Shown here: one piece after another, positions 1,111-25,816 of the stretch
Layout of the letters: each line of letters opens with the position of its first letter
Position numbering within the stretch: position 1 is the stretch's first letter
NCBI GenBank assembly: GCA_950097015.1
Contig: CATNEN010000007.1
Coordinates: 2,542,001-2,606,000 of the forward strand
Direction: 5' to 3'
From: Macrostomum hystrix
Lineage: Eukaryota; Animalia; Platyhelminthes
Length of the DNA stretch: 64,000 nt
Notes under the pieces: generated by a model
What the model was told of the DNA's origin: nothing
Database searches by the model: none
Seen by the model: the letters and a program-made list of their open reading frames with translations, nothing else
Program-made: the position numbers and the translations under genes

Positions 1111-1343
1111 GACCCTGTTATAGGGACTAAGAGTATTTTACTGTCTAGGGTTCAAAGAGGATATCCGCGGGATTTAAAATAGCAAACCATATATACAGTC
1201 ATTTGCGGAATACCCACGCAAACACTTTTATCCTCCTTTCTGTCAGACTTGAATTATCCATTATCCCCATCCTTCAATGCGCCATCATTATGGAAATCCT
1301 TCAAGCTTAGAGAGCCCAATAAGTGTGAGCTCAGGGTACTCAC

Positions 1344-2388: not shown

Positions 2389-2499
2389 CTTCGAAGGCAA
2401 GCAATAGGCCGCGCTTCTTGGCCAGCTGCAGCATCAGCTGGCGAGTTAGAGTTGAAGGCAAAAGTTTAGTGACTAACAGCCGAATTTTTACGGCAATTG

Positions 2500-4059: not shown

Positions 4060-5690
4060 AAGCTCCCAATCCAATTCTTCCACTCCCCAATCCAATTCTT
4101 CCACTCCCCAATCCAATTCTTCCACTCTCCAATCCAATTCTTCCACTCCCCAATCCAATTCTTCCACTCCCCAATCCAATTCTTCCACTCCCCAATCCAA
4201 TTCTTCCACTCCCCAATCCAATTCTTCCACTCCCCAATCCAATTCTTCCACTCCCCAATCCAATTCTTCCACTCCCCAATCCAATTCTTCCACTCCCCAA
4301 TCCAATTCTTCCACTCCCCAATCCAATTCTTCCACTCCCCAATCCAATTCTTCCACTCCCCAATCCAATTCTTCCACTCCCCAATCCAATTCTTCCACTC
4401 CCCAATCAAATTCTTCCACTCCCCAATCCAAGTCTTCCACTCCCCAATCCAATTCTTCCACTCCCCAATCCAATTCTTCCACTCCCCAATCCAATTCTTC
4501 CACTCCCCAATCCAATTCTTCCACTCTCCAATCCAATTCTTCCACTCCCCAATCCAATTCTTCCACTCCCCAATCCAATTCTTCCACTCCCCAATCCAAT
4601 TCTTCCACTCCCCAATCCAATTCTTCCACTCCCCAATCCAATTCTTCCACTCCCCAATCCAATTCTTCCACTCCCCAATCCAATTCTTCCACTCCCCAAT
4701 CCAATTCTTCCACTCCCCAATCCAATTCTTCCACTCCCCAATCCAATTCTTCCACTCCCCAATCCAATTCTTCCACTCTCCAATCCAATTCTTCCACTCT
4801 CCAATCCAATTCTTCCACTCCCCAATCCAATTCTTCCACTCCCCAATCCAATTCTTCCACTCCCCAATCCAATTCTTCCACTCTCCAATCCAATTCTTCC
4901 ACTCCCCAATCCAATTCTTCCACTCCCCAATCCAATTCTTCCACTCCCCAATCCAATTCTTCCACTCCCCAATCCAATTCTTCCACTCCCCAATCCAATT
5001 CTTCCACACCCCAATCCAATTCTTCCACTCTCCAATCCAATTCTTCCACTCCCCAATCCAATTCTTCCACTCTCCAATCCAATTCTTCCACTCTCCAATC
5101 CAATTCTTCCACTCCCCAATCCAATTCTTCCACTCCCCAATCCAATTCTTCCACTCTCCAATCCAATTCTTCCACTCCCCAATCCAATTCTTCCACTCCC
5201 CAATCCAATTCTTCCACTCCCCAATCCAATTCTTCCACTCCCCAATCCAATTCTTCCACTCCCCAATCCAATTCTTCCACACCCCAATCCAATTCTTCCA
5301 CTCCCCAATCCAATTCTTCCACTCCCCAATCCAATTCTTCCACTCTCCAATCCAATTCTTCCACTCCCCAATCCAATTCTTCCACTCCCCAATCCAATTC
5401 TTCCACTCTCCAATCCAATTCTTCCACTCCCCAATCCAATTCTTCCACTCTCCAATCCAATTCTTCAACTCCCCAATCCAATTCATCCACTCCCCAATTC
5501 AACTCTTTCACTCCCCAATTCAACTTTTTCACTCCCCAACATAACTCTTTCACTCCCCAATCCAGCAAGCGGCAGGACACAGTTCACTCCCCAATCCAGC
5601 AAGCGGCAGGACACAGTTCACTCCCCAATCCAGCAAGCGGCAGGACACAGTTCACTCCCCAATCCAGCAAGCGGCAGGACACAGTGCTGT
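4060..5690. repeat. 21-bp tandem repeat (CCAATCCAATTCTTCCACTCC) ending in about 4 copies of a longer derived unit
   Basis: Visible array 4060-5560; the TTCACTCCCCAATCCAGCAAGCGGCAGGACACAG unit repeats at 5560-5690. Confidence 0.95.
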
Positions 5691-5716
5691 CCTTGTGCTA
5701 AAAATGAAACTGCTAA

Positions 5717-6200
5717 TCAAACGCTTGAGACACACTCCGCCAAGGCCCCGTCGTACTGATTCGATGCGAGGTCGTCATCGTTCAGTTTCTGCGTGGGGGG
5801 ACCAAAACAACGCGTAGTTCTCATTTCCGTTAAAGTTGTCCGGCTGTCCGCTGGCCCACAGGCTCCCGTCAAAGCTGCATGGAGTTGTAGCTTACCCAAA
5901 ACCAACCACCCACTGGCTCAGCGCTACCCGGCCACTGACTGCCACCAAGAAGCAGTTTGTAAAGACTGTAGCTGGTCAGTATGCCCCAGTCCACGCTTGT
6001 GGACTGGCTTCACAAACCTGGATGCAGCAGTCAGCTCATATCTACCAGTAATCAGTAAAATTGAGCTAAGACAGTTTGAAGTGGCGCTGTCAGGGACGAC
6101 TGAAGCATCGTTTGTAGCATGTTCTTATGTAGTCCTTGGCTGCTGTGTCTTCAAGGAACGTCACGGATTGACAATCCTAAGCGCCAATTGCCTACTTGCA
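5717..6200 (-). pseudogene. Degenerate PAN/C-type lectin paralog of the gene at 8049-8786
   Basis: Pieces match the intact copy: LLGGSQWPGSAEPVGGWFWVSYNS, SFDGSLWASGQPDNFNGNENYA and LNDDDLASNQYDGALAECVS. They are broken by an apparent 4-nt insertion near 5880, a +1 in the G run at 5795-5800 and upstream stops. Confidence 0.75.
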
Positions 6201-6600
6201 GCGACAGAGTCACGTCAAACATATCAGAAAAAAATAATTAATTAAATACAATTAAAAGCAATTTTGAGTTTAAGGACTGGATTCGATTTATCACTTAGAA
6301 TGTAGCTCTTAATATTATACTGAAAAATAGTAGGTAAGCTAAAAGCAACTTACTCGCTAAAATATTGAAACAATTGCTTATTGTTTGCAGCGAATGAAGT
6401 GGCGAGCGTACATTACTTTAATTTTCTCGACCTTAAAAAACTCAGCAAAGCGTGAGGCCTTTAGCATCACGTACTGGATATATATGAATAAAATTGAAGC
6501 CTCAAAACTAGGTTACAAAATAATAAGCGAATGAGAATAGTTGTTTTAGGGTTAGGGTTAGTTTTCTTACACAAAGCAATAAAAATAAAAAGGTCACTTT

Positions 6601-7203
6601 TCAACGTTGATTTGCAGCGGCCGCGGCCGCCTCCGCCTTGATGGCAATTCTCAACTCATCGCACAGGCGCACAATTCGATCTGCTTCAGTGGCGAGCAAT
6701 GACAGCTGCGGCTGCTGCTGCTGCAGCTGTGCTAGAATCGCGTCTGGTCGCAGGTAGAGAGACAGGTCCACAAATGGATCGCTGTCGGGACCAGAAGATG
6801 AGTAGAAGTCGCCCTCGGCAACGCACGCATCGACCCCGATGCCGTCGTTCAGGTAAAACCGCCGGGCCCGCCGTCGATGCCGAATGCCGACGATGCGATC
6901 CCGCATGGCCTGTGGCACTCGCTCGCTAACGCGCAACCGATCGCCCGGAGCCGTCCGGACGTAGGGGAACGCTTCGGCAGTTCCGAACAGGCGGCGATGA
7001 ATTCCGGAGTCGCTGGTGACCTGCGCAGAGGTGGTCACCGTGATTCGATTGTCCACTGATGCGCCGTGACCCTCAGTGGGGTCGGCATTGTCCAGCAGGG
7101 TAACGTGTAGCCAGTTCAACGGGCGCTCCTCGACCCGTTCCAACTGCAGGCTGGCATTGTGGCACAGCACAGCCTCATAGGAGGCGGACACTCGGACATT
7201 GAC
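6601..7203 (-). CDS. Probable terminal exon of the helicase-RdRP-NTase gene (alternatively a separate ~202-aa gene of unknown function)
   Basis: GC-rich, non-repetitive 200-codon frame with a phase-0 acceptor (TGCAG|GTC at 7204/7203). It matches the phase-0 donor AAG|GTGAGC at 9369/9368. Confidence 0.55.
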   Translation of the reverse strand, partial: VNVRVSASYEAVLCHNASLQLERVEERPLNWLHVTLLDNADPTEGHGASVDNRITVTTSAQVTSDSGIHRRLFGTAEAFPYVRTAPGDRLRVSERVPQAMRDRIVGIRHRRRARRFYLNDGIGVDACVAEGDFYSSSGPDSDPFVDLSLYLRPDAILAQLQQQQPQLSLLATEADRIVRLCDELRIAIKAEAAAAAANQR

Positions 7204-10200
7204 CTGCATCAATGTTTGCGAATCAGCTATTTAGAAAGAGAGCAATGGAGGCGCTCTAGTGACACTGCACCTGATTCTACATTAACTCTTGCCAGCTAAG
7301 CAAAGCAAGTTGACTCCTTGATTTAGTATAGAGTATGGACCATTGGGTCGATGGATGGACCACGATGTTGGCCATCGTGAGAGGTTTGCACTGACTGGCC
7401 ATTTTGGTACCGAGCACACAAGGAAGTATATTGAACCAAGACAGCAGACCTATGAAACAACTTCCAGAATCACAAATAATCTGCATCTTCGAGACATTCA
7501 ACGATTCTCGTGGGGCGTCTGGTGGAAAAAGCACCAATATAGGCAAAAATATTCTGCTATCAAAGTTTCTTTATGTCGGCTATAACTGCTGGTTATAATG
7601 TACTAATTATATTGTTAATTGATACACTTTTGAACCAATTCGCCAAAGAGGTTTATACAGAGTAATGTCAGTTGTGCTTGTCACCAGGGTCTTCGACAGG
7701 AATCGCTGAATATCTCGAAAATGTTTACGTCGGATTTGAAAGTTAGTCGGATTTGTAAAGAACAGAAAATTTTGATCCAGATGGTGGGCTTTCACAAAAA
7801 TCGGTCTTTGGTTTGGGGGCTATTGTGAAGTAGACAGCTCATTTAGGTATCCTTCGGGAAAATTTTAGTGCCTGAGCAAGTGCTCTAGGATCAGATTATC
7901 GATGTATTTTAGAGGTTTACATTTGACGATGAGCTTTGTTTAGTTTTCAGCAGTCAGAATGGTCAAACGTTGAATTGCGCTCAGATTTCAAAGCTGGTGT
8001 TTCTGAACCCGCTTTCCTTAGCATCGGGAACTCTTCTAGCTCGTACAACTAGGTGAACGGAGAGACACACTCCGCCATGGCTCCTTTATACTCATTGCTG
8101 GTTAGCATACCATCGTTCAATTCGGGTGCCGAGGACCACATAGTAGCGTAGTTCTCGCCGCCACCACTGTTGTCTGGCTGCCAGAAGCTCCAAAGTCGAC
8201 TATCAATGCTGGAATTGCAGCTCACCCAGTACCAGCCTCCGGCTGGCTCAGCGCTGCCCGGCAGCTGCGTGCCCCCGAGTAGTGCGCTAAGCGAGTCGAT
8301 GCGAGCCAGTATGCCTCTGATGTGAGCCAGCTCAGCTGAGTCCGTGACGTCAGCCATGGTTGTGAGGCCTGGCAGTGAGTCGATTGAAGTCTTGGCTAGG
8401 TTCCAGTTCTTGAGATCCGAGTACAGCTTGTACTTGGTGCCGCAGAAGTCGTCAGCGAACCCGGCAGGACACAGAGTTCCGGCCGGCAGTCCCGACTGCT
8501 GCTTCACAAACACCTGCTTGATGCGAGTGCAGCTGCAGTCTCTCACGTACTTGCTGCACCTGTTGAACACGAACAGCTGGCACGGACCGTCGGCCACGCT
8601 GAATGCCTGGCAGTCAGTTGTTCCATCGCACAGACTAGCGCACTCCAGGTCAGATCTCGAGCTTAAGCGAGTCACTATGAACTGGGGCCTGAGACACAGC
8701 AGCCCAGGGACTTCATTGAAGATATTCGAATAGGCCAGCAGAGCTTTCGTCAGATAAACTACGATTACCAATGCCTTAGCAACCATTTTTTTGTATCTTG
8801 GTTGTGTTGTCTGACCGGACGCGAGCGCGATTAAGGTGTAAAATTTTACTGACGTGAAGCTTTTTAAGAGCTTAGTTTAACTGCTAAAGGTAGTAAAAGT
8901 CCCAAGTGACCTGAGCTTGGCTGTTTGCTTTTAAGGCTCAGGTAAATCTTCAGAGTGAGCTGTGAAGAATTGCAGTGCCGATGTGTCCGATGAATCTACA
9001 AGTCAACTATGCCAGCTGTCTGGATTACATCAACTGGACACCCACGCCTTGAAATCACGATTCTAGAAATTTCTCTTCTACGAGCTAAAAGCATCCACAG
9101 CGGATACCCCAAAGCTCCTAAAAGGAGTAAAGCCCTGATAGATTGAAGCCCATTAACAATGAAAACGCCTTTCAAATTTGCAAAAATGTCTGAAACGTAA
9201 TGGCAAGGTGAATCTGTCAGATCTCAGAATTTTCTCAGAATCTGTCAGATCATCAAATCAAACTCTGTTGTTTAAGCTCTGAAATCGCAGCTGTGGCTTA
9301 GAAGTAGCATGGCAGGAATTCGGAATCAGATCATAATTAGGAGAGTCACAACGAGGTGATAAGCTCACCTTGACTTCATGGCCCATCCGCTCCGGCAACG
9401 CGATGGTCGCCTCCGTCTGCACGAATCCCAAGCGAAGCAGAGCTTTAGAGAAGATCTCAAAGTCACCCTCGGAGCGCTGCGGCCGACGGCGCAGGCGTTC
9501 AGCGGTTGACGCCGGGTCAGCTTCAGCCGACTGCAGCCGGTAGAGGCCGCAGCCGAAGCCGCAGCCGAGGCGGCGATTCCGGCGGGCGGACTTCGCCGGC
9601 AGCGAGTTTGATGGCCGCTTGGAAGCCGACGGCTCGCCGTTTTCGTCGCGGCGACGCTTGTTGCCAGTTGACAGCGGCACCATCGGGACAGCGCCTAGAT
9701 GGTCGCGCTCGCTTTGAACAGTGGGCGGCGGCGGCGCCGGCTCAAAAGGCTGTCTGTCGAAGCTGTGTCGATACTTCTGACCCTTGGCCACGAAAGCGGC
9801 CATCTCTGCCAGCGAAAGGCTGGTTTGGGTGGCCGGCAGCGCCTCATCAGCGTTCAACAGGTAGAACTGGCCAGGCCGGATTGTCAGCTCCAGACTGGCC
9901 GCCAGATCGGACCGGCCAGTCGGCATGCCGGAAACCTGAGTGCAAATTATTTAGGGAGAAATTTGTTTCGCGAAGTGCAATGATGAGACGCGTTGTCAGT
10001 CAATTTTTTCGGATTTCTCACCTGCCGCATGAGCGCTTGGAACAGTCGTCTGGCAGCTGCTGAAAGCCAAAGCTCCCTGTCAGGACAGTCGGGGGGCGGG
10101 CACCTCAGGAGGCTGGCCGGCTTGAGCCGATGATCGCCTATCAAGCCCGAGACGCAGTTTAACAGGCGAAAACGGCAATCGTCAGACAGGCAACCGACTG

Positions 10201-13200
10201 CCAAGGACAAGCTGGCGCCGTCCATGAAGTAGCGACAGGCCCGCCGACGGTGGCAAGTATTTAGAAGCCAACCAGCCGCGCCGGCCATCAGGCGAACCTC
10301 GCGACGCAGCCGGGAAATCGCGGCGGCGTCGCCCTCGGCAGTGAGGCGAAGCAGCGGCGGACGCTCAGGCAACGGCACTAGGCTGACCTTGGAGCAGCCG
10401 GTGGCCGCGGCCAGTCGAGCTTCGTGGAATTCGGGCACCCTGGACAGCTCCTGGCTGAGTCGATTAGGCAGCGTCTTGGCGAAGCGAGCTCCGGTGCCGG
10501 CGCCAACGTCGGTGCCGCCGCGTAGGTCGGCCGCAGCGGCGGCAGCCAGAACGGCGACGTCCCGAGTGTAATGAAGGCGCAGCAGGGCGGCCCGCGCGCA
10601 TTTGGCTGCGTAGCGAACAGCCGCGGCCTCTATGGTAACCGTCTGGCGAGATGGAATCGGCCAGCAATAGGTCACGTGACCATCCAGACCGGCGCAGCTT
10701 CGATAGAAGCCGATGATGCGAGCTCCGAGCGCGGCTGCTGCGTCGGCATCGGCATCGGGCAGGCAAAGCTGGTCGGTAATGATAGCGAGTTGGTTTACAA
10801 GCGACTGTCCCAGGTCTCTGGACTGTCCGAGTTGTCCTGAATTTCCGAGTGACTGAACTGAGCCAACTAGGGCGCCGGCGCCGTCGTACTCCAGGCGTAG
10901 GCAGTGCAATGCTAGCGCGTAGAACTCGGCAGTCGGCATCTTTAATTGACGCTCGCCATCCATGTCGACAGCGTCGTTCAAGTGGTCGTTGTCGGCGTCT
11001 TCGGCGGAGCGGACGATGCCGGCAGCTCGGGCCCAGTCAACCAGCAGGCGCAGCAGAGGCAGGCGGTGCGGACAGGCCGAGTACAAGCCCAGCAGGTAGT
11101 CGGTCTTCTCTAAGCCGATCGTGTTCATGCTGATGTCGCAGGCCACAGAGTCGTCGCCGTCAACGGTCAGGATGCAGCGAATAAGCGGGACTCTGTGAGT
11201 CAGCAGGTCCTCCTTGGCTGTGGCCACTTTGTCCAGCGCCGGAGACACAGCGTTGCGCAGCCAATGTCGGTGGAGATCCGGATCGGGCAGTGCAGCCAGC
11301 TCTGGCGTTGGCGGCGAGGACAATTTTACGCACAGATCGACATCCGAGCCGACGGCGTCGCACAGAAAGACCGAGGCGGAGCCGTAGACGGCAACCCTCA
11401 GGCTATCGCTAAAGTCGGCAATCGCAGTGGACACCAGAGCAGCGGCGCTATCGGCTCTGCCGACTGCCTCAGTCAGGGCCGGCAGCGACTCGCGCAGGCT
11501 GGCCAGGGCGGAGTGACCAACGTCCAGTCGAAGATTTCTCTCCGCGTTCGGCGCTCCAAAGGTGGTAATGGAGAGCTGTTGAGCGATGTCGCAGAGAATG
11601 TCGGCCATCACCCATGGGAAGCTCAGGCCCAGCGGCAAGCGGCTGCGGCTGTCAGAGTCGTCAAGACCGGCTGCGTCGTCGAGGTCGATGTCGCCATCTG
11701 CGTTGGATTCCTTTCGAGCGGCGCCGGCAGAAGCCAGGTACCAGGCGGCGGCCTTGGCACGCCGCTTGTTGACAATGTCTCCTCCGGCCAGGCTCGGATC
11801 GGAATCGAACTCGCGACGATATCTTTAAAATTGTTTTTATGTGGGATTATTCGATTTCCTTTCACGGATAAAATAAGGAAAATGTGATGGGGAGAAAGCA
11901 AGAATATAACGAATGGGTCACAAAGAAGTGCGTTTCACTTCTGAAACTTGTGACCTTGTCCTTAAAGCTGGTTACCGTTCACTGCGACCATAATTTAATA
12001 TTTGCAGGAGGATTGCGGGGCAATGGCACGCAAAAAATGTGACACTAGACCCACAGCCAACGAGGAGGCAATTCTTCCCATTTCGCTGACTCCTGAGCAC
12101 ACACGCTCACAGATACCGTACACAGGCACACGCTCATACAGGGGTGTAAATCTGCCCAGGCTTTCTCATCGTCAGGCAGTGTACACTCTCACTGTGACTT
12201 CGAGGTTGTCCCTCAAGGGCCTAAATTCCACGACAAGCCCGCAAGCCTTCTCTCCGCGGCTGCGCCCCAAATAAATGTGGCCTCGCTGCGGAATCGAGCT
12301 CAGGACCTTAATAATAATAATAATTGCAGGAGGGCTGCGGGCAATGACACATAGTTTGGTGACACTAGACCCGCAGCCAGCGAGGAGGCAATTCTGCCCA
12401 TTTCGCTGACTCCTGAGCACACACGCACACAGATACCGTACGCAGGCATACGCTCACACAGGTGTGTACATCTGCCCTGACTTCCTCATCGTCAGGCAGT
12501 GTTCACTTCACTGTGCCTTGGAGGTTGGCCCTCAAGGGCGTGAATTGCACGACAAGCCCCCAAGCCTTCTCTCCGCGGCTGCGCCCCAAATAAATGTGGC
12601 CTCGCCGTGGAATCGAACTTAGGGACCGTGGTGCGAGTGGCAAACGCGTTAACCGCTCTGCCACCGACCCCCCTGCTCAGGACCTTGGTGCGAGGGGCAA
12701 ACGCGTTAGACCACTCTGCCACTCAACAACCCCTTTGACTATGATTTTGTTACCATTCTGTGCGACTGTTTTGTGCGCCCCTGTGTGACCGTGTTACAAT
12801 GGATAACGGGATATAAGTTCGTCGGCGAAATATTCTACCCAGGCTTTCAATGCCATGTCTTCTTTAGCCATAGTCAGCAAAAACATTGGTCACGAAACGG
12901 TAACAGGTGACAGTGACGGTGACAGCCCCTTTTTGTGACCATTCTGTCTTATACGGAAAAGTGAGTACTTCACAGCCCACCCCTCCCCTTGGTGACGCAC
13001 CTGGCAACCAAGGCGTCCCTGGCTCCCCTGAGGCTCCGCTGCGCCGCGCCCAGATCAGAGCGCAGCGTCGAGTGCCAGCGCATGCAGCGGGTCAGCAGCA
13101 GCTCGCGCTCGCTGGCGAGGCCCCACTGGCCCAGCAGCGCCCGCAGGTCCAGCCTGTAGCGGCCCAGTTCAATGCGCGCCTTCTCGGCGAAGGCCTCCCA

Positions 13201-16200
13201 GCCAGGCCAGGTCAGGACCCGCCTGCCACAGGCGTCAGCTAGGGTGCTGGTCGGCGGGGCGGTGGCCTGCTCCAGAAGGTCCCAGTCCATCGCGTAGGTG
13301 CGACAGCGGCGGTAGAGATGGCCAAGGAGCTTCTGGGACTGGTAGGTCTGGTGCTGCGGCTTCTCCATGAAGTCCGGGTAACCAAAATCATTAACCGCCT
13401 TACGTGCATCCACCGGAACCTGATGGGGAGTAACAGAACCATTAGCCGACTTCAAGTGTGAGTTACTATTAGTAGTGTCAATGATAGAGCATTTGACACA
13501 ATACATCCAGAGCATGCACAAGTGATTCAGAAAACACGGGGCACGCTTTGCAACACCCCGAAACCACATAACACACCCAGATCCCACATAACACACACAG
13601 ATCCCACATAACACACACAGATCCCACATAACACACCCAGATCCCACATAACACACACAGATCCCATATAACGCACCCAGATCCCACATAACACACCCAG
13701 ATCCCACATAACACACACAGATCCCACATAACACACCCAGATCCCACATAACACACCCAGATCCCACATAACACACACAGATCCCATATAACGCACCCAG
13801 ATCCCACATAACACACCCAGATCCCACATAACACACACAGATCCCATATAACGCACTCAGAAGCCACATAACGCACCCAGATCCCACATAACGCACCCAG
13901 ATCCCACATAACGCACCCAGATCCCACATAACACACCCAGATCCGATATAACACACCCAGATCCCACATAACGCACCCAGATCCCACATAACGCACCCAG
14001 ATCCCACATAACACACCCAGATCCCATATAACGCACTCAGAAGCCACATAACGCACCCAGATCCCACATAACGCACCCAGATCCCACATAACGCACCCAG
14101 ATCCCACATAACACACCCAGATCCGATATAACACACCCAGATCCCACATAACACACCCAGATCCGACATAACACACCCAGATCCGACATAACACACCCAG
14201 ATCCGACATATCACACCCAGATCCCACATAACACACCCAGATCCCACATAACCCACCCAGATCCGACATAACACGCCCAGATCCGACAGTACACACCCAG
14301 ATCCGACATAACACACCCAGATCCCACATAACGCACCCAGATCCAACATAACACACCCAGATCCCACATAGCACACCCAGATCCCACATAGCACACCCAG
14401 ATCCCACATAACACACCCAGATCCCACATAACACACCCAGATCCCACATAACACACACAGAACATGCATGACCCACCTTTGGCACAATGCCAGTCTTTGG
14501 AAAGTCGACAGCCACAGACTGGGACTCGGCCAGTTTCCTGGCCAGCGGGTCGATTGCACCTTGAACCATCTGGTCGCACAGAGCCAGGTGCATGTGAGCA
14601 ACCCGGCCCAAGAAGGTGTTCTCCAGATTGGCCAAGTAGAAGTCAGCCAGCAGGTGCGGGGCGGAGACATTGGTGCCCGGCTGAGCTGTGGGCGGATTCG
14701 CAGCCAGGGCCGAGTAGTTCAATGCCGGGTGAATTGCTTGCGACGGCGGCACAAGGTTCGAGTCCCAGATGACGCTGAACTGATCACCATCGAGGTCTCC
14801 ACCGCTGCAGTCGGCGGCGAGGGATGCCTGACAGTCCGCGCGAGCTGGCATGAGCAACACGTTCACCTGCGGTGAGATTAGGATGTGGTGAAGATGAAGA
14901 TGAGATGAGGAACTCAAGCTGGGGATCTGTGTGAAATCAAGCTGGGGATCTGTGTGAACTCAAGCTGGGGATCTGTGTGAAATCAAGCTGGGGATCTGTG
15001 TGTGAACTCAAGCTGAGGATCTGTGTGAAATCAAGCTGGGGATCTGTGTGAACTCAATCTGAGCATCTGTGTGAAGTCAAGCTGAGGATCTGTGTGTGAA
15101 CTCAAGCTGAGGATCTGTGTGAACTCAAGCTGAGTATCTGTGTGAAGTCAAGCTGAGGATCTGTGTGTGAACTCAAGCTGAGGATCTGTGTGAACTCAAG
15201 CTGAGGATCTGTGTGAACTCAATCTGAGGATCAGTGAGAACTCAATCTGAGGATCTGTGAGAACTCAAGCTGGGGATCTGTGTGAAATCAATCTGAGGAT
15301 CTGTGTGAACTCAATCTGAGGATCAGTGAGAACTCAATCTGAGGATCTGTGTGAACTCAAGCTGAGTATCTGTGTGAACTCAAGCTGAGTATCTGTGTGA
15401 ACTCAAGCTGAGGATCTGTGTGTGAACTCAAGCTGAGGATCTGTGTGAACTCAAGCTGAGGATCTGTGTGAACTCAATCTGAGGATCAGTGAGAACTCAA
15501 TCTGAGGATCTGTGAGAACTCAAGCTGGGGATCTGTGTGAAATCAAGCTGGGGATCTGTGTGAACTCAATCTGAGGATCTGTGAGAACTCAATCTGAGGA
15601 TCTGTGAGAACTCAATCTGAGGATCTGTGAGAACTCAAGCTGGGGATCTGTGAGAACTCAAGCTGGGGATCTGTGTGAACTCAAGCTGAGGATCTGTGTG
15701 AACTCAATCTGAGGATCTGTGAGAACTCAATCTGAGGATCTGTGAGAACTCAAGCTGGGGATCTGTGAGAACTCAATCTGAGGATCTGTGAGAACTCAAG
15801 CTGGGGATCTGTGAGAACTCAAGCTGAGGACCCGAGGGCAGTCTCTACTCTCACCCATTTCGATAAGCCCGGCTTCTCCTGATCAGTCACAGCCCTGGCG
15901 ACACGCAAGTCGCCCGGATGCAGGCAGGGGTTGCGGTAGATGAGCACACGACCTTGCACCGTTTGCAACACGCCGTCATCCTCGCGGCAAATCTGGAATG
16001 AAAGTAGAAAATATCCCTAGAAGACGAAGGATTAATGAAAAAATATATACCAACAAATATACCAAAATCTAATAAAAAATCTGCTTTGAGTCGAATCCCA
16101 AATTGAGGCTGCTCACCCGCAGGTAGACCTCTCCCTCTGCCAGCAGGCCGGTGGGATCCGCAGCTCCCATGACCCGGCAACCCTCGGCCACCGGCAGGGC

Positions 16201-19200
16201 GGCGCGGCTGCGCAGGTCGGTGACGCGAAATTGGAAGGCCAGCCGCAGCAGGGAGCGCCAGTGCGGCTCGGAGGCCAGGTCGAAATTGGCCGCCACGCGG
16301 TTCACCAGGTGCGGTTCGATGTACTCCTGGGTTGGGTCACATTCAACTAACAACCAGTCAATGCTGTCTATTAATCAGTTCATACAGCCTAGCAACCATT
16401 TAATCCCGTCTAGCAATCAGTTGATACAGCCTAGTAACCATCATTTTATGTTGCCTAGCAACCAGTTCATACAGCCTAGCAACCATTTAATGCTGCCTAG
16501 CAACCGTTTCATGATGCTTAGAAAAGATTTCATGAGCAACCAGGTGATGCTGCCTAGAAATCAGTCCGTGCTGCATAGCAACCAGTTCGAACCTGCAAAG
16601 CCCGACTGGCGGCGTCCCCTCCAGCTAGGGATTCGGACGCCCGAGTCAGCGCCGCCTCCTGCAGCTCGAGCAGCCAGGATCGCAGATCCCACTGGCTGGA
16701 GCCTGGCCCAATCGCGCGAAGGCTGAGCGACTCCAGCAGGGTGATGGCCTCGCGGTTCAGACAGACTGACAGGGCGCGGGCCGGCTGCACCACACACAGC
16801 TGGATGTCAGTTTCAGATCGAAACTTCTCCATCGAGGGCCGCAGTAGGATGTCGATATCCTCGCTGAGGGACGTGGGAAATCGAGGACTAAAGGCTGAGA
16901 CTGTGGAGCTAGGGCTTCGTGAAGTGGGGATCAGAAATTAAGTAATGCTTACAGCAATAATACATGAAGGATCTGGGGAAAAGTTTTAGAATATTGTTTT
17001 GGAATTCGGACGAATCTTTGGTCTATTTGGGTTTCTGGAATAATATCTAATCAATTTGAGGATTAGGGAAAATCTAATTTGGCATAGTCAAAAATGTGGA
17101 CCTGGGATTTTTTTAGCATTTTTATCAGCATGTCATGCGGCGCCTCACCCAAATGCCGATCGGAACTCCGGATCATCCTCGGGATCCACCACAACTAGGA
17201 CGCCTTTGGCTCCGCCGTAGCGGAACTGATAGGCCGATGGAGACCGCGAAATGTCCAACTGATGAGCGATCTGCTCAGCCAGCCGCCGGCTAATCTTGCC
17301 GCAGCCTGCTCCAATTGCGGGTTGGGGGGTTCCAGCTTTGCAATTTCATTTTAGACAGGGAGCAGTTCACTGAGAATGGTCTCACCGTCTGTCAGTAGAT
17401 CGCCGTTGGCAGCTCGCCGGTCGTCTACGCGACCGGTACGCCAGGCTGGCAGGTCCACGATGGGCTGGTCGCCTGTGTGGAACAGGGCCAGCCTGGCCAG
17501 GTACTTCGGCACCGAATTGTAGTCGAGTGGGCTGCCAACCAGACTGTGGCGCATCTCCGCAATGACCTCCTTGGCAATGTCGAACACAAGTCAAGTGTGA
17601 TCATGTGCATTTGGCTTGCACTCGTGATCACTACTAAAGAAATGACATTGCAAAGTGGACAGGAACATCTTCCCATAATTTCTACCCGCAGCTGATGCTG
17701 GGACCCATTGCTTTTAACAGTAGAATATTTAAAATCCCCTGGGGAAACAATTCCCACTGGCCTACTGCCTACGATAGCTCCCAAACCAAATGACCAGTTT
17801 TCGTGAAATTCTACCATTTGGATCAAAGTTTTCCACCGAAACTCAAGAACAGGGGTCAAATTTTTGTTGCGCATCTTCTGAAAAAAGAAACAAGTCGCCA
17901 GCTCTTCAGACCGTCGAGATATTCAATTTTTCTGGCCGAAGGTCCGATTTTTCCATAAGAGCTAGTGTATTTCATACACCCCTATACACGAATTTGCACT
18001 GCGCCTCAGTGCGGCCTTGCCAGGCCTTCAAAATTTATCAGCATGTCACCCGAGTGTGCCTGCACCATCTCCGTCTTCGGTGGTCACCTACCTTTATCTA
18101 GACGGAGCAGCTGGACCTTTAACAAGTAATAGTTGAGTTTAGGCCAATATCGAGGCTTTATTAGAGAAAGTAGAAAAATTCGCTTTAGGGACTTCATTGC
18201 CAGCTGGAGGCACCCTGCTGACGGTGCTGACGGCGTCGGGGTGGTGACTGATTGGTTGACGGACTAGAGGAGCATGTAAAGTAGTTGAGTGTTGCCCAAT
18301 GTCGAGGCTTGATCAGCGAAAGTAGAGAAATTCGCTTTAGGGACTCCATAGTTGGCTGGTGCCACTTGTTGAAGGTCCAGCAGCTCCGTCTAGATAAAGG
18401 TCGGTGACCGCCGAAGTCGGAGATGATGCAAGCACATTCGGGTGACATGCTGATAAAGTTTGAAGGTCCCCCCTTGTTAGTTCTACTTTTACGAGTAGAA
18501 CTGTGGCACTCGTAAGGGCACATTTTGCTTCTGCGTTTAGATTCGAACCACGGGACCACCTCATTTGATTCGGCATCAAAAAAAGTGACAGTGCTGAAGA
18601 TTTATCTAATTTTTATCTAATTTCTCGAAGCTAAATTTCTTTAAATCTTCCAGCCGTGAGCTTCTATAGAAAATTACTTTTGACATATAGTTTAGTTTGC
18701 TTTGCATTGTTTATGTATTTTTTCCCACAAAACGGCCCTTTTAGGTCTGATTTGAATAATTGCGTACTAACAATAGTAGTCTGCAGTGCAGTTGACATTT
18801 CTAATTAAAAACAGCTGACACTTTTAATAGAAAGTTTATGCGCGGCCTCACCTGATCATGGACGTCGACAAACATGCAGCGCTGACTGCGCAGCTGACTG
18901 CCGCTTGCCGATAAAAATCGAAACCGCCTGCCAGCCAGGACCAGGCCGTCGATAAGGATTTGGCGAAATCGGTGTCTGTCGCTTTTGGACAGATTTCGAA
19001 TCGAGTTGCCCGCCTCGTCAGTGAAGGACAGCAGCAGGAAGCGCCTACCCAAGGGTGCCCACCTTCGCAGCAGCCTGGAAGAGGCCACGGGCACGGGTGT
19101 TTGACAGACAAGCCGGCTGGGTGTCGCGCTGGCGCGCAGCACACTCACGGTGCCGGGCGGTTGCACCGGCTGCAGTAGGTCAATATTGTCCTGCGGCAGG

Positions 19201-22200
19201 TGCTTCAGCAGGTGCCTGCAGGTCTCCAGTCTGGCCGCTGGATCGGCTAAGAAGGCTGGCAGCGACATCAACTGCTTGAGGCCGACAGACATCTTCAGCA
19301 GACTGGCCAGGTCCGCCGCGTCCAGGTGTTGCGCAATGTCCCTGAGGGTTGGCTGAACAAACACAGCCTCGCAGAGCCGAAATCGGCGAGCGTCAAGAAG
19401 GCATCTCAACAGCCAGCGGCTGTTAAAGGCGGCGGCATCGAGATCGGCTTCGTTCGAGCACCGCGGCCGACTCGGAGTTGGCGGAGCGTCGATGTCATCG
19501 TAGGAGGTCGCATTCTGTCTCGCACCTGACGACGCCTCGACGTCCGGATGCAGCAGCGTCAAGTGAGTCTCCAGCAGCGGCAGCGGAAAGTGTCGGCGTA
19601 TCCTCAGCCAGCCGGCTGCAGGCGAGCGGGTGAGGGGTGGGTGCAAGAGTTTAATTACGCCCTTAAGGGTCAACCTCTATGACACAGTGAGTGCAAACTG
19701 TCTGCGTACGATATCTATTTGCGTGTGTGCTCAGGAGTCAGCGGAATGGGCAGAATTGCCTCTCAATTTGTGTCAAATATTTCAGGTTAGTGAGCTCAGC
19801 AACACAAACGGAGCCAGAGTGAGCTCAGCAACACACACGGAGTCAGAGTGAGCTCAGCAACACAAACGGAGCCAGAGTGAGCTCAGCAACACAAACGGAG
19901 CCAGAGTGAGCTCAGCAACACAAACGGAGCCAGAGTGAGCTCAGCAACACAAACGGAGCCAGAGTGAGCTCAGCAACACAAACGGAGCCAGAGTGAGCTC
20001 AGCAACACACACGGAGTCAGAGTGAGCTAAGCAACACAAACGGAGCCAGAGTGAGCTCAGCAACATACTCGGAGTCATAGTGAGCTCAGCAACACACACG
20101 GAGTCATAGTGAGCTCAGCAACACACACAAAGTCATAGTGAGCTCAGCAATACACACGGAGTCAGAGTGAGCTCAGCAACACACACGGAGTCAGAGTGAG
20201 CTCAGGTACATACACGGAGTTAGAAGTCGTTCGTGCAAGCGCAGCAGCAGCAGCTGACACTCGGCCTGAGCTGCCAGGAACTGTCTATAAGCTTCCATCA
20301 GCAGCTGATCTTCCTCATCCTCATCATCATCATCATCCTCATCCTCATCATCATCATCATCATCGGGCAGCTGTACATCCGGGCAGAACCGCATGGGCAC
20401 CGCCAGCCAGCCCAGCTGCCAGTCGACCAGCGCCAGGCCGTTCGTGCCTGGTGTAGCCAGCCAGATCTTCAGCTTGCCGCCGAACAGCTCCAGCACCAGA
20501 GCCCGGCTGGCCGAATCCTGCGTCCCGGCCAGTTTGCAGCGCAACTGTGGCTCGCCGCAATTAAACTCTTGCACAATGCTGAGCTCTAATTCGCGCTGAA
20601 ATCTGCCAACAGCAAAGCCGGACATTGGCAGCAGGATTTCGTCCACCGAGGAGCTGTTGGAAGAATCGAGCGCCGCTTCGGGCACCAGGGGCAGAGTATA
20701 GACTGGAACGCCGCCGTGCCGGAAGCTCCACCGGCGACAGAATCGCCACCAGCGCAGCAGCGGAAGGTTGCCGACGCCGCCGCCCCCGCCGCCGCCCCCG
20801 CCGTCGATGCAGGCGACCACAACCGAAGTGCTGGCAGGAAACACTCCGGCGATGCCGGCGGTGGCCGAGCCGGCGGAAGTGAACTGGTCCACCCGGCTCA
20901 CCCGAAAGCAGCAAGGCGCCTCTTCAAGACTTTTCAGCAGCTTTTTGAGACCGCTGTCGCGCAGGTCAACAAACAGGCGGAGTACCAGGTGGCGACTGCT
21001 GAACGACCAGATTGACGAAGCTGGGGCGGCATTCGACTGATCGCCGCTACTGCCACCGTCGTCTGGATCATCTTCATCGTCGCTCTATGAAATTTGGTAA
21101 GCGAATGGGAAGGTACCCTTAACAGTAGAAAGACCAGACCACGGGGGTATGTGCCGGTGGTTTTTGCCACCAGACAATCCGCCGAGAATCGTTAAATATC
21201 TCAACGATACCGATGTTTCTTGATCCTGGAAGTTGTTTCATCGGATAGAGTGGAAAGTTTTAGCCTGTGTTCTGGATTTTCATGGCGATCGGTTGAATAT
21301 TTTGGGAGATACAGAAAAAAAGTTGGCGTTTTGAAATATCCACCCGGTCTTTCTTCTGATAAAGACGCATCAAGGGGTGCTGTTTGTAATTTGAGCCGTT
21401 TTGAATAAGCGACTCGAAGCTACGCGTCTCGACCGACGCTACAACGAGTCGAAAAACGATCGCTTGGGAGTTTGAGTCTTAAACCTGCGATTTTATCTGG
21501 ATAAACAGCGGAACAAACTCACCAGAGCCTGAGTCAGCTGCTGCACAATGGCCACAGTGGCCGGGCAGGGTCCGCCAGCTTCCATGGACTCGCGGCTGAG
21601 CAGGGCGTCCAGAGCCGCCTCCCTTAGGCGCAGTCGGGCAGCGGCGGCGCGCTCGTCGGCGTCGGCCACCACCACGAAGCGGCTGCCGGGTCGGCGAGCG
21701 CGGCCGCGACTCTGCACCAGCTGGATGAGGGAGCGGGCAGCGTCGAAGCGAATCACGACGTCGCACTCGCCGACATCGAGGCCCTCCTCCAGCACTGAGG
21801 TGCTCACCATCAGGCGACTGACGCCAGAGTTGAACCTGTCCAGCACCAGCTCCTGTTCCTCCTCCCAGCGCATGCCGTCCGGACCACCCTGCATGGCAGC
21901 AGCGTGAGGGAGGCGTCATACAGCTTGCCCCCCTGACCACAATGCGTTTCTCTGACCCCAAGGTATCACTCTGACTGCAATTTGTCACTCTGACTGCAAT
22001 TTGTCACTCTGACCACAATGTGTCACTCTGACCCCAATGTGTCACTCTGACCACAATGTGTCACTCTGACCCCAATGTGTCACTCTGACTGCAATTTGTC
22101 ACTCTGACCACAATGTGTCACTCTGACCCCAATGTGTCACTCTGACTGCAATTTGTCATTCTAACCACAATGTGTCACTCTGACCGCAGAGTGTCTATGA

Positions 22201-25200
22201 GACCGGCTACCTGTTTCTGACCCCAAATACATGTTTCTGACCCCAATACCTGTATATGACTACAGTACCGATCTGTGACCCCCAATCCATCACTCACCTG
22301 TCCAATGCACAGCTGAGGTCGGAGGCCCTGAAACTGCTTGTCGGCCAGGCCTTCGCTGACAAGCATTCTGGCGGTTCTCCTGGTGCTGGCAAACACAAGC
22401 GCCCTCGACTTGTCGCCCAAACGTCGCAGCTCGTTGTGCAAAGCTGTCAGCCGCTGGCTGATGTCCGTCTGCCAGCCTGCGGCTTGACGAGACGCCAGCC
22501 AGCCAGACAGCAGCTTGGCAAGGTTCGGCAGCTCCCGCTGCAGCAGCGTCACAGCGAAGCTCAGGCCAAGAGTGCGGGCGATGTCAATCTGGGATAATTG
22601 GGAGAGCACATGCAACCTAACTTTATTCCCATTCTCCTGTATCACATATTTTTATGCGATTAGCACATCCCAGACTATCGAATCCCATTCTGACACGTCA
22701 CAGACTCCTAAATCCCACTTTTAAAAATCCAAAAATCTAAAAATCCGATTCCTACTCATCTCATACATTTGGAGATCCCACTCTCAGGCAAGCCATACAG
22801 TGAGATCTCATTCTGAGGCATCCCATGCAGTGAGATCCCATTCCTAGGCAACCCATACAGTGAGATCCCATTCTGAGGCAACCCATGCAGTGAGATCTCA
22901 TTCTGAGGCAACCCATACAGTGAGATCCCATTCTGAGGCAACCCATGCAGTGAGATCTCATTCTGAGGCATCCCATGCAGTGAGATCCCATTCTGAGGCA
23001 ACCTATGCAGTGAGATCCCATTCTGAGGCATCCCATGCAGTGAGATCCCATTATTAGGCAACCCATACAGTGAGATCCCATTCTTAGGCAACCCATACAG
23101 TGAGACCCCATTCGCACGCACCACGTCCATCAGCGCCATCAGCTCCCTGAGCCGGTCGGCAGTAGGTCCGTAGCCGCTGTGCAGCGGACTAGACTTCAGC
23201 GCTCTCAGGTGTCCCAGCACATACCCGAAGCTCCTAATCATTGCCGGTGTGTCCGCCAGCCAGGCACCGAGTCCGCCACCACCCGCTCGGATGTCTATGG
23301 CGCTTAAACGATCAACTAGCAGCCGCCTAGCCTCGTCCAGGAAGTTTTCCAGCACAGCCGATCGCGCCACCGGAACCTCCAGCACCGTGGGCGTCTGGGC
23401 CCTGGCCTCAGCCGGCCGAAATATCCCAGTGCCCGGCGGGAACCTGGCCAAGTAGCGCCTCAGCCGCTCCTCCCCGCTGTCAATGTCGCGCAGCTCGATT
23501 GGAGAGGCCGTCAGACCAAGGAGGCGAGGGCGGGCGCTGTCGGGCAGCAGGTTCAGCAAATCCAGCACCTTACAGGCGAGAAACAGGCAGGATTTAGTGT
23601 GACCTTCTGACTTTGTTCAGCTCATTGACTCCCACAGTCTATCAGCTGCAGTCCCACAGTCTATCAGCTGCAGTCCCACAGTCTATCAGCTGCAGTCCCA
23701 CAGTCTATCAGCTGCAGTCCCACAGTCTATCAGCTGCAGTCCCACAGTCTATCAGCTGCAGTCCCACAGTCTATCAGCTGCAGTCCCACAGTCTATCAGC
23801 TGCAGTCCCACAGTCTATCAGCTGCAGTCCCACAGTCTATCAGCTGCAGTCCCACAGTCTATCAGCTGCAGTCCCACAGTCTATCAGCTGCAGTCCCACT
23901 GCCCAACTGCTAAATGTGCAGCACCAGTGAGAAGTTGTGCCCGCCAGTGCCAGCGTGGTGACACTCGTCCAGCACGATGCAGGAGAAGGCCGTGAGGTCC
24001 ATGTCCCGCTTTTCCCGCACTCGGGACAACAGAAGGCCGGCGGTGGCCACAAGTAGGTCGTGAGAGCCTTCGCGAAGTCGACGAACGCTTATGTCCGTGG
24101 CATTTTCACCGCACAGGGCCGCGACACGTAGGCCTGTGTCAGACTGAGGCAGGTAGGTGAGTGGAGAATCAGAATCTAGTGCCAGCCAATCAGAATCTAG
24201 TGCCAGCCAATCAGAATCTAGTGCCAGCCAATCAGAATATAGTGACAACGAATCAATCGTGCCAGCCAATCAGCCAATGATTCAGTGACAGGCAAACAGA
24301 ACTAGAGACAGCCAATCAGAACCAGAGACAGCTAATCAGAACCCAGAGACAGCTAATCAGGATACAGTGACAGCCAATCATACCATAGTGACAGCTAGAA
24401 CCCAGTGACGCCTCCTCACCTCTAGCGACCTGGCCTGCTGGAACACCAAAGGCACCCGTTCAACCAGCAGGACGCCCATGAGGTGCGGGTTGAGGCGCCG
24501 CATTCGGGCTAGCAGGAGGGCGGCAACAAGGGTCTTGCCCGAGCCCGTAGGCATCACCAGAACCAGATCGCGTTGAAGTGCTTCAGCAAAGGCCTCCAAT
24601 TGGTAGCGTCGGGGCTGGCGCCTGTGCCGGTGTCGGCAACGCTGCCGGTTGCCACTGAAGTCATCGTCGGTCAGCAGTAGGTCGCGCCATTCAAAATCGC
24701 CTGGCCGATCGATGCTGGCGAACTTAATAGGACCAGCTCCGCCGACCGCTACTGGCTGGGCAGCTGACTCGGCTGCGCCTGATTGGACGCTGCAGGAACA
24801 TAGGACAATTGCGCAGTTTGAAGCGGATAGATCGAGTGGACAGTGAGGAGGTGGGGGATAAAGGAAAAGGAGCGGAGAAAAGGATGGAGCGGAGAGGAAG
24901 GTGGAGAGGAAGGTGGAGCGGAGAGGAAGATGGAGAGGAAGGTGGAGTGGAGAGGAAGGTGGAGCGGAGAAGAAGGTGGAGAGGAGAGGAAGGTGGAGCG
25001 GAGAGGAAGGTGGAGAGGAGAGGAAGGTGGAGAAGAGAAAAAGGTGGAGAGGAGAGGAAGGTGGAGCGGAGAGGAAGGTGGAGAGGAGAGGAAGGTGGAG
25101 CGGAGAGGAAGGTGGAGAGGAGAGGGAGGTGGAGGTGGAGAGGAAGGTGGAGCGGAGAGGAAGGTGGAGAGGAGATGAAGGTGGAGCGGAGAGGAAGGTG

Positions 25201-25816
25201 GAGAGGAGAGGAAGGTGGAGAGGAGAGGGAGGTGGAGAGGAGAGGGAGGTGGTGGTGGAGAGGAAGGTGGAGCGGAGAGGAAGGTGGAGAGGAGAAGAAG
25301 GTGGAGCGGTGAGGAAGGTGGAGCGGAGATCATTAAATAGATAGATCAGAAGACATTTCTCATTTGATTGACATGTTGTGCATCTCTGATATAATGGGCT
25401 GCATTGATTAGAATGCCAAAAATAAAACAAAAATTTTTGTAATCCACTGACTTGTGAGCAAAGAACTGCTGGGTATCGCGCCTTTCAATCTCCATCAGTC
25501 GGTTGACAAGTTGGTGAGGCTTTTCCTTGCGACCGAATCGCTTCCCTAGCAGAACAATTTTGTCCAGGCCGAATGCGACAAAGCTGACCCCATTGGGCCC
25601 ATATGGAAGCTCTTTGCCAAGAACAGCTTTGCACACAGCGCAGACAACATTCTGAACGCCACGTTTATCGCCTGCCTCAGAGTGAAGACCATTGCGTGCA
25701 AACACGAGTTCCCTGAGCTCTGGCTTCAGTGCCAAGTGGGTAGAATTGGATTGAAAGAAGAACAGTTCCCGCAGTTCTACTAATTGAGCCCCACACCTGG
25801 GATTACCACATTGCAT
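6601..25816 (-). CDS. Multidomain RNA-silencing protein: RLR-CTD-like Zn domain + DExH helicase + RNA-dependent RNA polymerase + Cid1/TUTase-like nucleotidyltransferase + C-terminal unknown domains
   Basis: Exons: 25816-25452, 24789-24420, 24143-23925, 23568-23122, 22588-22298, 21888-21523, 21084-20214, 19615-18852, 17569-17386, 17305-17149, 16863-16593, 16326-16117, 15992-15855, 14866-14477, 13419-13001, 11822-10022, 9935-9369 (or read-through to the stop at 9258), and 7203-6601. All junctions are GT-AG with matching phase. Total 8433 nt (2810 aa), or 7941 nt (2646 aa) for the short form. Confidence 0.85.
8049..8786 (-). CDS. Secreted PAN/apple domain + C-type lectin protein, intronless, 245 aa
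   Basis: Hydrophobic N-terminus ([18 protein letters not shown]), PAN-type CASLC...DCQAFSV...CQL, then CTLD features [20 protein letters not shown] and a terminal EC. Confidence 0.8.
   Translation of the reverse strand: MVAKALVIVVYLTKALLAYSNIFNEVPGLLCLRPQFIVTRLSSRSDLECASLCDGTTDCQAFSVADGPCQLFVFNRCSKYVRDCSCTRIKQVFVKQQSGLPAGTLCPAGFADDFCGTKYKLYSDLKNWNLAKTSIDSLPGLTTMADVTDSAELAHIRGILARIDSLSALLGGTQLPGSAEPAGGWYWVSCNSSIDSRLWSFWQPDNSGGGENYATMWSSAPELNDGMLTSNEYKGAMAECVSPFT
9947..11822 (-). CDS. Exon encoding the RdRP C-terminus plus a Pol-beta-superfamily nucleotidyltransferase (Cid1/TUTase/TRF4-like)
   Basis: RdRP tail RAKAAAWY, then [18 protein letters not shown] (GS..DxD at 11336-11383), third Asp in ACDISMN (11135-11137), [14 protein letters not shown] and a FYALALHCL helix. 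The coding exon ends at the donor 10022/10021. Confidence 0.85.
11991..12725 (-). mobile_element. Tandem tRNA-derived SINEs: one 5'-truncated copy, one full copy and a duplicated head
   Basis: A-box-like GTGGCAGAGCGGTT, B-box-like AGTTCGATTCC and an (ATT)n tail. The same body recurs at 29875, 38790, 40292 and 42880. Confidence 0.85.
13001..19615 (-). CDS. Eukaryotic (QDE-1/RDR/RRF-type) RNA-dependent RNA polymerase domain, exons 8-15
   Basis: Motifs [64 protein letters not shown], catalytic SGGDLDGD (DLDGD at 14783-14797), [15 protein letters not shown] and LGHLYR. Confidence 0.97.
13560..14460. repeat. 20-bp intronic tandem repeat (CAGATCCCACATAACACACC)
   Basis: Visible array filling the RdRP intron 13420-14476. 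Confidence 0.95.
14905..15830. repeat. ~23-bp intronic tandem repeat (GAACTCAAGCTGAGGATCTGTGT)
   Basis: Visible array filling the RdRP intron 14867-15854. Confidence 0.95.
18024..18466. repeat. Inverted repeat with ~103-bp arms (18024-18127 and 18364-18466) in an RdRP intron
   Basis: Arms compared by eye show about 9 mismatches. A degenerate single copy lies near 35168-35250. Confidence 0.9.
19790..20205. repeat. ~29-bp tandem repeat (GAGTGAGCTCAGCAACACAAACGGAGCCA) abutting an exon donor
   Basis: Visible array in intron 19616-20213. Confidence 0.9.
21523..24789 (-). CDS. RIG-I/Dicer-type SF2 DExH helicase domain, exons 2-6
   Basis: Q motif PRRYQLE, Walker A MPTGSGKT (24531-24554), Ia PLVFQQ, DECHH (DECH at 23958-23969), [30 protein letters not shown] and VI QSRGRAR. 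Confidence 0.95.
21940..25330. repeat. Five separate intronic minisatellites in the helicase region
   Basis: 21940-22180 (TGTCACTCTGACCACAATG), 22770-23110 (30-bp GTGAGATCCCATTCTGAGGCAACCCATGCA), 23630-23900 (CAGTCCCACAGTCTATCAGCTG), 24165-24390 (GCCAATCAGAA-based) and 24850-25330 (GGAAGGTGGAGAGGAGA-type). Confidence 0.9.
25452..25816 (-). CDS. First coding exon: Zn-binding domain resembling the RIG-I-like receptor C-terminal domain (Yippee/Mis18 fold)
   Basis: MQCGNPRC...THLAL...[16 protein letters not shown]...FVAF follows the CxxC..H..CxxC..G..Y spacing of the RLR CTD. The ATG has GCC context and an in-frame upstream TAG. Confidence 0.65.

Follow-up and report, generated by a model that had tools for sequence, protein, structure and literature searches.

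Does one animal gene encode an RNA-directed RNA polymerase (RdRP) together with a helicase and a nucleotidyltransferase (NTase), activities that elsewhere cooperate as separate proteins? The question is raised by 64,000 nt of the flatworm Macrostomum hystrix genome (assembly GCA_950097015.1, contig CATNEN010000007.1, positions 2,542,001 to 2,606,000; hereafter the window, whose numbering is used throughout). The original prediction, made from the letters of the window, had joined scattered minus-strand open reading frames (ORFs) at 6601-25816 into one gene fusing a RIG-I-like receptor (RLR)-type helicase, an RdRP and a terminal nucleotidyltransferase (TENT). We confirmed the gene with its architecture and found that it is expressed. 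The most probable account, to which we give a probability of about 0.6, is that one intact 18-exon gene is expressed as a four-part chain with a conserved tail, working as a self-contained RdRP complex for silencing.

Gene model and catalytic motifs

To build the gene model, stop-free segments were listed, and in-phase GT..AG pairs were scored by splice-site quality and by peptide alignment to three full-length homologues. The model runs on the minus strand from 25816 to 6601 and has 18 exons, with a coding sequence of 8,433 nt (2,810 amino acids, aa) and a single terminal stop codon (6603-6601). All 17 introns are GT-AG and all junctions are in phase, as had been predicted of the scattered ORFs. 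The start ATG at 25816 has an in-frame stop upstream, and homologues begin at the same residue. The tblastn matches of the three homologues were collinear along 6601..25816.

The Pfam scan of the minus-strand ORF pieces placed the expected domains on consecutive pieces. DEAD/ResIII matched at 24378-25430 and 23910-24269, followed by Helicase_C at 21493-21894. The RdRP profile (PF05183) came next on six pieces, from 18801-19673 down to 12970-14670, and eight exons of the model match its positions 2 to 581 in order. The final match, at 9947-11638, was to MTPAP-like_central, which represents the palm of non-canonical poly(A)/(U) polymerases. The catalytic motifs DECH, DLDGD and GS..DxD..D had been described as looking intact, and they were so in the spliced protein, where GSGKT starts at residue 204, DECH at 304, TASP at 338, QSRGRARR at 623 and DLDGD at 1575. 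The NTase motif GS...SDVD...D was likewise intact (G1968-S1969, D1981/D1983 and D2050).

An orthologous locus in Macrostomum lignano

The protein aligned in one high-scoring segment pair, at 66.8% identity, with a hypothetical protein of M. lignano (BOX15_Mlig000965g3, 2,821 aa, here P0090; model residues 1-2799 against 1-2810). In the global alignment, which ran end to end over the whole coding span (6601..25816), exon identities were 58-90%, the largest gap was 7 aa, and there was no gap of note at the junctions. Most intron positions were shared between the two loci, including that of the intron between RdRP and NTase. However, the M. lignano locus has one intron fewer and two extra, and its last intron holds no counterpart of the lectin-like ORF described below. 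An AA_permease_2 exon (2.9e-31) lies at 39451-40239 (+), divergent from the 5' end of our gene, and since a divergent permease stands upstream in both Macrostomum loci, the microsynteny is conserved. By these sequence comparisons the locus is orthologous to BOX15_Mlig000965g3, which differs in being from another species, or as a deep paralogue. The 17 junctions have this support independently of reads.

The first exon (25452..25816) encodes the N-terminal Cys4 zinc domain (C3, C8, C59 and C62), assigned by AlphaFold and VIA to the fold of the RLR C-terminal domain (CTD) and conserved in 18 family members; the junction 25452|24789 is the sole phase-compatible pair of a good donor and a good acceptor. 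The helicase follows. Exon 2 (24420..24789), found by Pfam DEAD/ResIII, holds Hel1 with motif I, GSGKT (24531-24545), and exon 3 (23925..24143), defined by Pfam DEAD and junction scoring and 90% identical to P0090, holds motif II, DECH (23958-23969). Junction scoring and the P0090 alignment gave exon 4 (23122..23568), with motif III, TASP (23500-23511), and the start of the insertion between the RecA lobes, and exon 5 (22298..22588), with the remainder of the insertion and the start of Hel2. Exon 6 (21523..21888) matches Helicase_C at 1.4e-14, carries the motif QSRGRARR (21691-21714) and ends in the donor CTG|GTGAGT. Exon 7 (20214..21084), which links helicase and RdRP, contains acidic and Gly runs and has no recognised domain; it is joined in phase on both sides (21523|21084 and 20214|19615) and is 58% identical to P0090.

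The RdRP begins with its N-terminal part in exon 8 (18852..19615; Pfam 4.9e-15). Exons 9 (17386..17569) and 10 (17149..17305) were placed by tblastn with homologues and phase-matched sites, and exons 11 (16593..16863), 12 (16117..16326) and 13 (15855..15992) by Pfam RdRP matches and phase-matched sites. The catalytic loop DLDGD (14783-14797) lies in exon 14 (14477..14866; Pfam 5e-26), within a GGDLDGD that is invariant in 19 family members.

Spliced transcripts

Transcript evidence came from four small public sequencing runs of one study which, although they bear no RNA label, are of RNA type; they hold 74-86% of the words of the NTase exon. Contigs of these runs were placed on 7500-13460, with exon 18 and the helicase exons lying beyond that stretch. 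They behaved as cDNA: exon edges were sharp, and neither the non-repeat intron nor 7898-9290 had any depth.

Exon 15 (13001..13419), the last RdRP exon, was covered by contigs over 13001-13421 that continue upstream for hundreds of nt. The next intron (11823..13000, GT..AG, phase 2) separates RdRP from NTase and contains a dispersed repeat. A joint 11822|13001, skipping these 1,178 nt, was present in runs X5, X6 and X7, with CT..AC on the plus strand corresponding to GT..AG on the gene strand. Record 18 of X6 spans the splice, with 10718-11822 (1,105 nt) joined to 13001-13262 (262 nt). This joint is identical to the junction 13001|11822 that had been derived beforehand from the sequence, and it leads from the RdRP frame into the NTase frame.

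Exon 16 (10022..11822) carries the MTPAP-like_central match and, in its structure model, the predicted TENT/Cid1-type NTase (GS at 11378-11383, SDVD at 11336-11347, D2050 at 11135-11137) and, behind it, a beta-alpha-alpha-beta-beta-alpha module. The 86-nt intron after it (9936-10021, junction 10022|9935) was removed in contigs of X5, X6 and X1. Exon 17 (9369..9935), a conserved C-terminal region with no known domain, is also defined by homologues, and contigs reach 9367. The last exon (6601..7203), identified by tblastn to Macrostomum and Hydra proteins, encodes the rest of this conserved region and the stop codon. The contigs end at 13421 and 9367, extending 800-900 nt outside the placed stretch, and when two shared letters are allowed per site these ends agree with the junctions 14477|13419 and 9369|7203. 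Past 9369, contigs have two further letters, which agree with the acceptor at 7203.

The splicing into one frame that the original prediction proposed was seen directly at 13001|11822 and 10022|9935 and fits the contig ends at 14477|13419 and 9369|7203; the remaining junctions come from the orthologue alignment. Spliced contigs cannot prove that all 18 exons stand on one molecule. A word-based search with the linker exon (20215-21084) for spliced ORFs across the helicase-RdRP junctions returned none, and was probably swamped by low-complexity words.

N-terminal zinc domain

The first 121 residues were modelled by AlphaFold with a confidence score (pLDDT) of 94. A VIA alignment of this model to the RIG-I CTD gave Z 12.1 and a root-mean-square deviation of 2.5 A over 105 of the 121 aa. 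Foldseek ranked first the CTD of DRH-3 bound to 5'-triphosphate (5'-ppp) RNA, and RLR CTDs made up nearly all of its 50 best matches; the CTDs of LGP2, MDA5 and DRH-3 also resemble the domain, with Z about 11-12 for RLR CTDs. The four cysteines C3, C8, C59 and C62 are invariant or nearly so across the 18 family members, and their positions agree by offset with C810, C813, C864 and C869 of RIG-I. The Pfam scan of exon 1 gave no match to the RIG-I_C-RD profile and the domain stands before the helicase, so we call it CTD-like in fold only. The model indicates an RLR-CTD-like zinc fold, with a putative role in sensing RNA ends.

Helicase and RdRP

The closest solved relatives of the helicase, taken with the first 720 residues of the paralogue P0075, were AncD1D2 (2.5e-39), DCL1 (5.8e-38), LGP2 (2e-29) and RIG-I (3e-29), with DCL4, Dicer-2 and MDA5 also among them and FANCM/Hef further off. 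The helicase also has the Dicer/RLR motifs I, II (DECH), III (TAS) and VI (QxxGRxR), and its description as RLR-type held up, with Dicer and RLR helicases as its nearest solved relatives. The region from TASP to Helicase_C, a possible Hel2i insertion domain, is about 190 aa long, and in P0075 LGP2 aligns across it in one stretch. The linker to the RdRP gave no match in a Pfam scan at E up to 1 in four lineages.

The RdRP was closer to plant RDR structures (1e-51) than to QDE-1 (1e-15), and family homologues matched PF05183 at 1e-113 to 1e-130. Its DLDGD loop (aa 1575-1579) is the DbDGD of eukaryotic cellular RdRPs.

Nucleotidyltransferase and C-terminal tail

The NTase model (pLDDT 80) superposed over residues 92-435 on a whole TENT catalytic module. 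Its fold matched TUT1 at Z 20.2 and Cid1 at Z 20.0 (261/323 residues), and CutA, mtPAP, GLD-2, URT1 and TUT7 at Z about 20. The bi-domain TENT fold, with its catalytic and central (PAP-associated) parts, was present in the model, although the Pfam PAP_assoc profile did not match the NTase exon. GS, SDxD, the third carboxylate and a lysine were invariant in 35 of 36 aligned NTase members across kingdoms. On the structure model, the tailing module is a TENT of the Cid1/TUT1 type, with predicted activity. Among the members examined, a degenerate NTase motif (GA ... SPVE) occurred solely in Dendronephthya gigantea LOC114515528 (P0128), which may have lost tailing activity.

Beyond the TENT, the beta-alpha-alpha-beta-beta-alpha unit is followed by about 390 aa that are conserved family-wide, with consensus blocks such as RFGxFY and ERPLxW. 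Pfam found no domain in these 390 aa at E up to 1 in four lineages, and a feature search of the ESM Atlas with exon 18 gave no match.

Distribution of the family

A HMMER search with the NTase exon against 1.84 billion representative proteins returned only 71 matches, many of them 2,200-2,750 aa in length and matched at about residue 1,750-2,000, and Pfam identified DEAD, Helicase_C, RdRP and MTPAP-like domains in them. The same collinear architecture was present in more than 40 proteins, single-ORF contigs included; a Logan contig of 8,138 nt from another organism holds all the domains in one uninterrupted ORF of 7,074 nt. Animal members came from Hydra vulgaris (LOC105846402), Hydractinia, Rhopilema, Dendronephthya, the glass sponge Oopsacas, the acoel Convolutriloba and Artemia. 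The dinoflagellates Prorocentrum, Polarella and Effrenium, the protists Diplonema, Phytophthora and Pythium, and the streptophytes Riccia (a liverwort) and Mesotaenium also have members. No Dictyostelium-like (Asn-rich) sequences were among the retrieved family proteins.

Custom profiles of the N-terminal domain and of the NTase found both modules in most members, and the NTase in oomycete RDRs. In a full-length alignment of 19 sequences, the catalytic residues of helicase, RdRP and NTase were invariant. From their invariance in 19-36 members, drawn from animals, alveolates, stramenopiles and plants, we argue that selection has kept all three activities. Two EukProt proteins, P0095 (3,298 aa) and P0093 (3,213 aa), have about 415-465 extra residues ahead of the N-terminal zinc domain, and P0095 carries a dsrm domain (PF00035) as well, so the family has acquired further RNA-binding parts.

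That helicase-RdRP fusions exist, for example in Dictyostelium, had been stated in the original prediction and agrees with the literature, in which helicase-RdRP fusions were reported from that organism (PMC3661229, citing Martens 2002). Bollmann et al. (2016; PMC4791657) extended the helicase-RDRs to peronosporomycete oomycetes, Hydra and Nematostella, placed RDR-borne helicases in one clade apart from those of Dicer, and cloned a P. sojae RDR cDNA with RACE. By sequence, our gene is a member of this known family (Dictyostelium, oomycetes, Hydra, Nematostella). In it, as in Dictyostelium RrpA/B/C and the RDRs of Phytophthora, Hydra and Nematostella, a DEAD/DExH helicase and Helicase_C precede the PF05183 RdRP within a single chain. 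The Hydra RDR (P0008, LOC105846402) is collinear with the Macrostomum gene over its whole length, and the Phytophthora and Pythium RDRs are also collinear, with the same NTase module and its catalytic residues kept.

In contrast, the helicase-RDR papers describe only helicase and RdRP, and neither the C-terminal TENT nor the N-terminal RLR-CTD-like domain. The words 'nucleotidyl' and 'C-terminal' are absent from the text of PMC4791657, which mentions no N-terminal domain. A flatworm survey reported four M. lignano RdRPs and found no RDE-3 orthologue there (PMC5594548), and an animal RdRP survey mentions neither helicase nor NTase (PMC6396948). We found no description of the NTase module, the N-terminal module or the full architecture in the literature searched, which left most subscription journals outside, so an earlier mention is possible, for example in comparative-genomics reviews. 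The suggestion that the full architecture was new stood only in part: it is widespread in databases as uncharacterised proteins, and the helicase-RdRP family, with its Hydra and Nematostella members, was described in 2016 (PMC4791657), whereas the NTase and N-terminal modules appear undescribed. The domain profiles and alignments indicate that the four-part architecture, with TENT and RLR-CTD-like domain, is old and widespread in eukaryotes.

Repeats and neighbouring sequence

The last intron holds an intact 245-aa ORF at 8049-8786 (-) with a signal-peptide-like start and many cysteines. An assignment as a C-type lectin was rejected, Pfam giving only a weak PAN match (E 0.014). With almost no RNA-contig depth and no counterpart in the M. 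lignano intron, the ORF lies outside this mRNA. A degraded partial copy of it is found at 5726-5985 (-), just downstream of the gene.

The dispersed repeat in the RdRP-NTase intron (12077-12872) has two related copies. Its summed contig depth in the RNA-type runs was 1,000-8,000, with many variants and joints, and it represents an abundant transcribed repeat family. A tRNA-derived origin was considered and dropped, as ARAGORN found no tRNA.

Tandem minisatellites, with units of 17-30 bp in up to 45 copies at 85-100% identity, occupy 8 of the 17 introns (13553-14461, 14910-15830, 19789-20224, 21933-22185, 22772-23113, 23630-23899, 24167-24395 and 24869-25329) and give rise, in several frames, to long ORFs that are spurious. 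A long tandem array at 4045-5580, close to the downstream end of the gene, has a GC skew of -0.77 and contains three overlapping repeat-ORFs of 350-511 aa. Further on, the end of an ORF at 2201-3616 (-) gave a match (5e-17) to the first part of the sodium:neurotransmitter symporter (SNF) family, and this ORF is probably an exon of a downstream transporter gene.

Discussion

In the RNA-directed RNA polymerase complexes (RDRC) of S. pombe (Rdp1-Hrr1-Cid12) and Tetrahymena (Rdr1 with Rdn1/Rdn2), RdRP, helicase and Cid1-family NTase cooperate as separate subunits, and Hrr1 is not known to be a helicase of the Dicer/RLR type. These complexes have no known RLR-CTD-like domain, and the Macrostomum protein would be their functional analogue rather than a member. 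In C. elegans, EGO-1/RRF-1, DRH-3 and MUT-2/RDE-3 are also separate proteins. MUT-2 is a TENT that tails RdRP templates. DRH-3, a helicase of the Dicer/RLR type, binds 5'-ppp RNA through its CTD; that CTD follows the helicase, whereas the CTD-like domain of the Macrostomum protein precedes it. The DECH helicase of the Macrostomum protein belongs to the same branch of the superfamily as those of RIG-I, MDA5 and LGP2, and its Cys4 zinc domain has the fold of theirs; however, the protein lacks CARDs, its zinc domain is N-terminal, and RdRP and NTase are fused to it. RLRs are not known from plants and protists, where the family also occurs.

That the protein works as a single-chain RdRP complex we infer by analogy with these systems. 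The TENT module would add untemplated nucleotides to the 3' end of template or product, and the RdRP would copy RNA. The helicase and the end-binding domain would engage the duplex, or the product at its 5'-triphosphate end, so as to translocate, clear or hand over double-stranded RNA (dsRNA), with the output going into the silencing of transposons or viruses.

The original prediction had likewise suggested that one chain may sense, tail and copy RNA for antiviral or transposon silencing, which is a reasonable reading. Several points weigh against this account. The junctions from helicase to RdRP rest on the M. lignano alignment, read support in this species covering only 7500-13460. No solved TENT matches the NTase significantly by sequence (E 0.29). 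The RdRP, tailing and helicase activities are all predicted, and which of tailing and copying comes first is a guess. In Nematostella, three of the four RdRPs are induced by poly(I:C), a viral mimic, and no secondary small interfering RNAs (siRNAs) were detected (PMC12768352). Reports on non-nematode animal RdRPs likewise give no detectable secondary siRNAs (PMC12768352, PMC6396948), and Pinzon et al. have made the case that animal RdRPs are functionally labile (PMC6396948).

These reports make an immune-effector role a serious rival. The protein would again be one chain with active enzymes, but it would act as a dsRNA- or virus-induced effector or sensor of innate immunity, with a logic akin to that of RLRs, making or modifying RNA for signalling or direct interference without secondary siRNAs. 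Its RLR-CTD-like domain and RLR/Dicer-type helicase would suit such a role, as would the behaviour of the induced Nematostella RdRPs (PMC12768352; PMC8476169). However, relatives studied by genetics work in siRNA pathways, as Dictyostelium RrpC does in spreading and in DIRS-1 silencing (PMC3661229, PMC3950715), and the NTase fold is predicted to be that of a TENT and not of cGAS/OAS. We consider this role rather unlikely, and the best placed of the rivals.

The NTase, or the helicase, might alternatively be a non-catalytic scaffold within one gene, like the pseudo-NTase modules of some terminal uridylyltransferases. The strong divergence of the NTase from solved TENTs, the missing PAP_assoc match and the motif loss in the Dendronephthya paralogue point this way, but the conservation of GS, SDxD, third carboxylate and lysine in all but one of the aligned members and the complete bi-domain TENT fold of the model make a scaffold quite improbable.

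That two or three adjacent genes were misread as one, through chimeric models or read-through, might be read from the stop met 10 codons beyond the donor at 13001, the internal ATG in the NTase exon and the limited stretch on which contigs were placed, but it is hardly credible given the in-frame GT-AG splice from RdRP to NTase in three runs, the non-repeat intron devoid of contigs, the collinear proteins of other organisms and the identity of every exon to a single M. lignano protein.

A wider proposal can also be made, which we put forward tentatively and as less probable than the favoured account of a self-contained silencing complex. The helicase-RDR family may be an ancient four-part single-chain RdRP complex dating from early eukaryotes, one that would include the genetically studied oomycete and perhaps the Dictyostelium RDRs. 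Judged by its N-terminal domain, RLR-CTD-type sensors of RNA ends would then have been paired with Dicer/RLR-type helicases before animals arose, and RLRs would descend from, or share a root with, a silencing amplifier.

The family offers a natural single-chain version of the machinery, from sponges and flatworms to dinoflagellates, oomycetes and liverworts, in which selection appears to keep three activities together, and one polypeptide would be usable for cryo-electron microscopy and biochemistry of coupled tailing, copying and end recognition. Published helicase-RDRs of Phytophthora, Hydra and Nematostella are predicted to carry the two modules that the literature searched does not describe, and their knock-out phenotypes, as well as the cnidarian lack of secondary siRNAs, may need re-reading. 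That an RLR-CTD-like fold occurs outside animals is also relevant to how RIG-I-like receptors arose.

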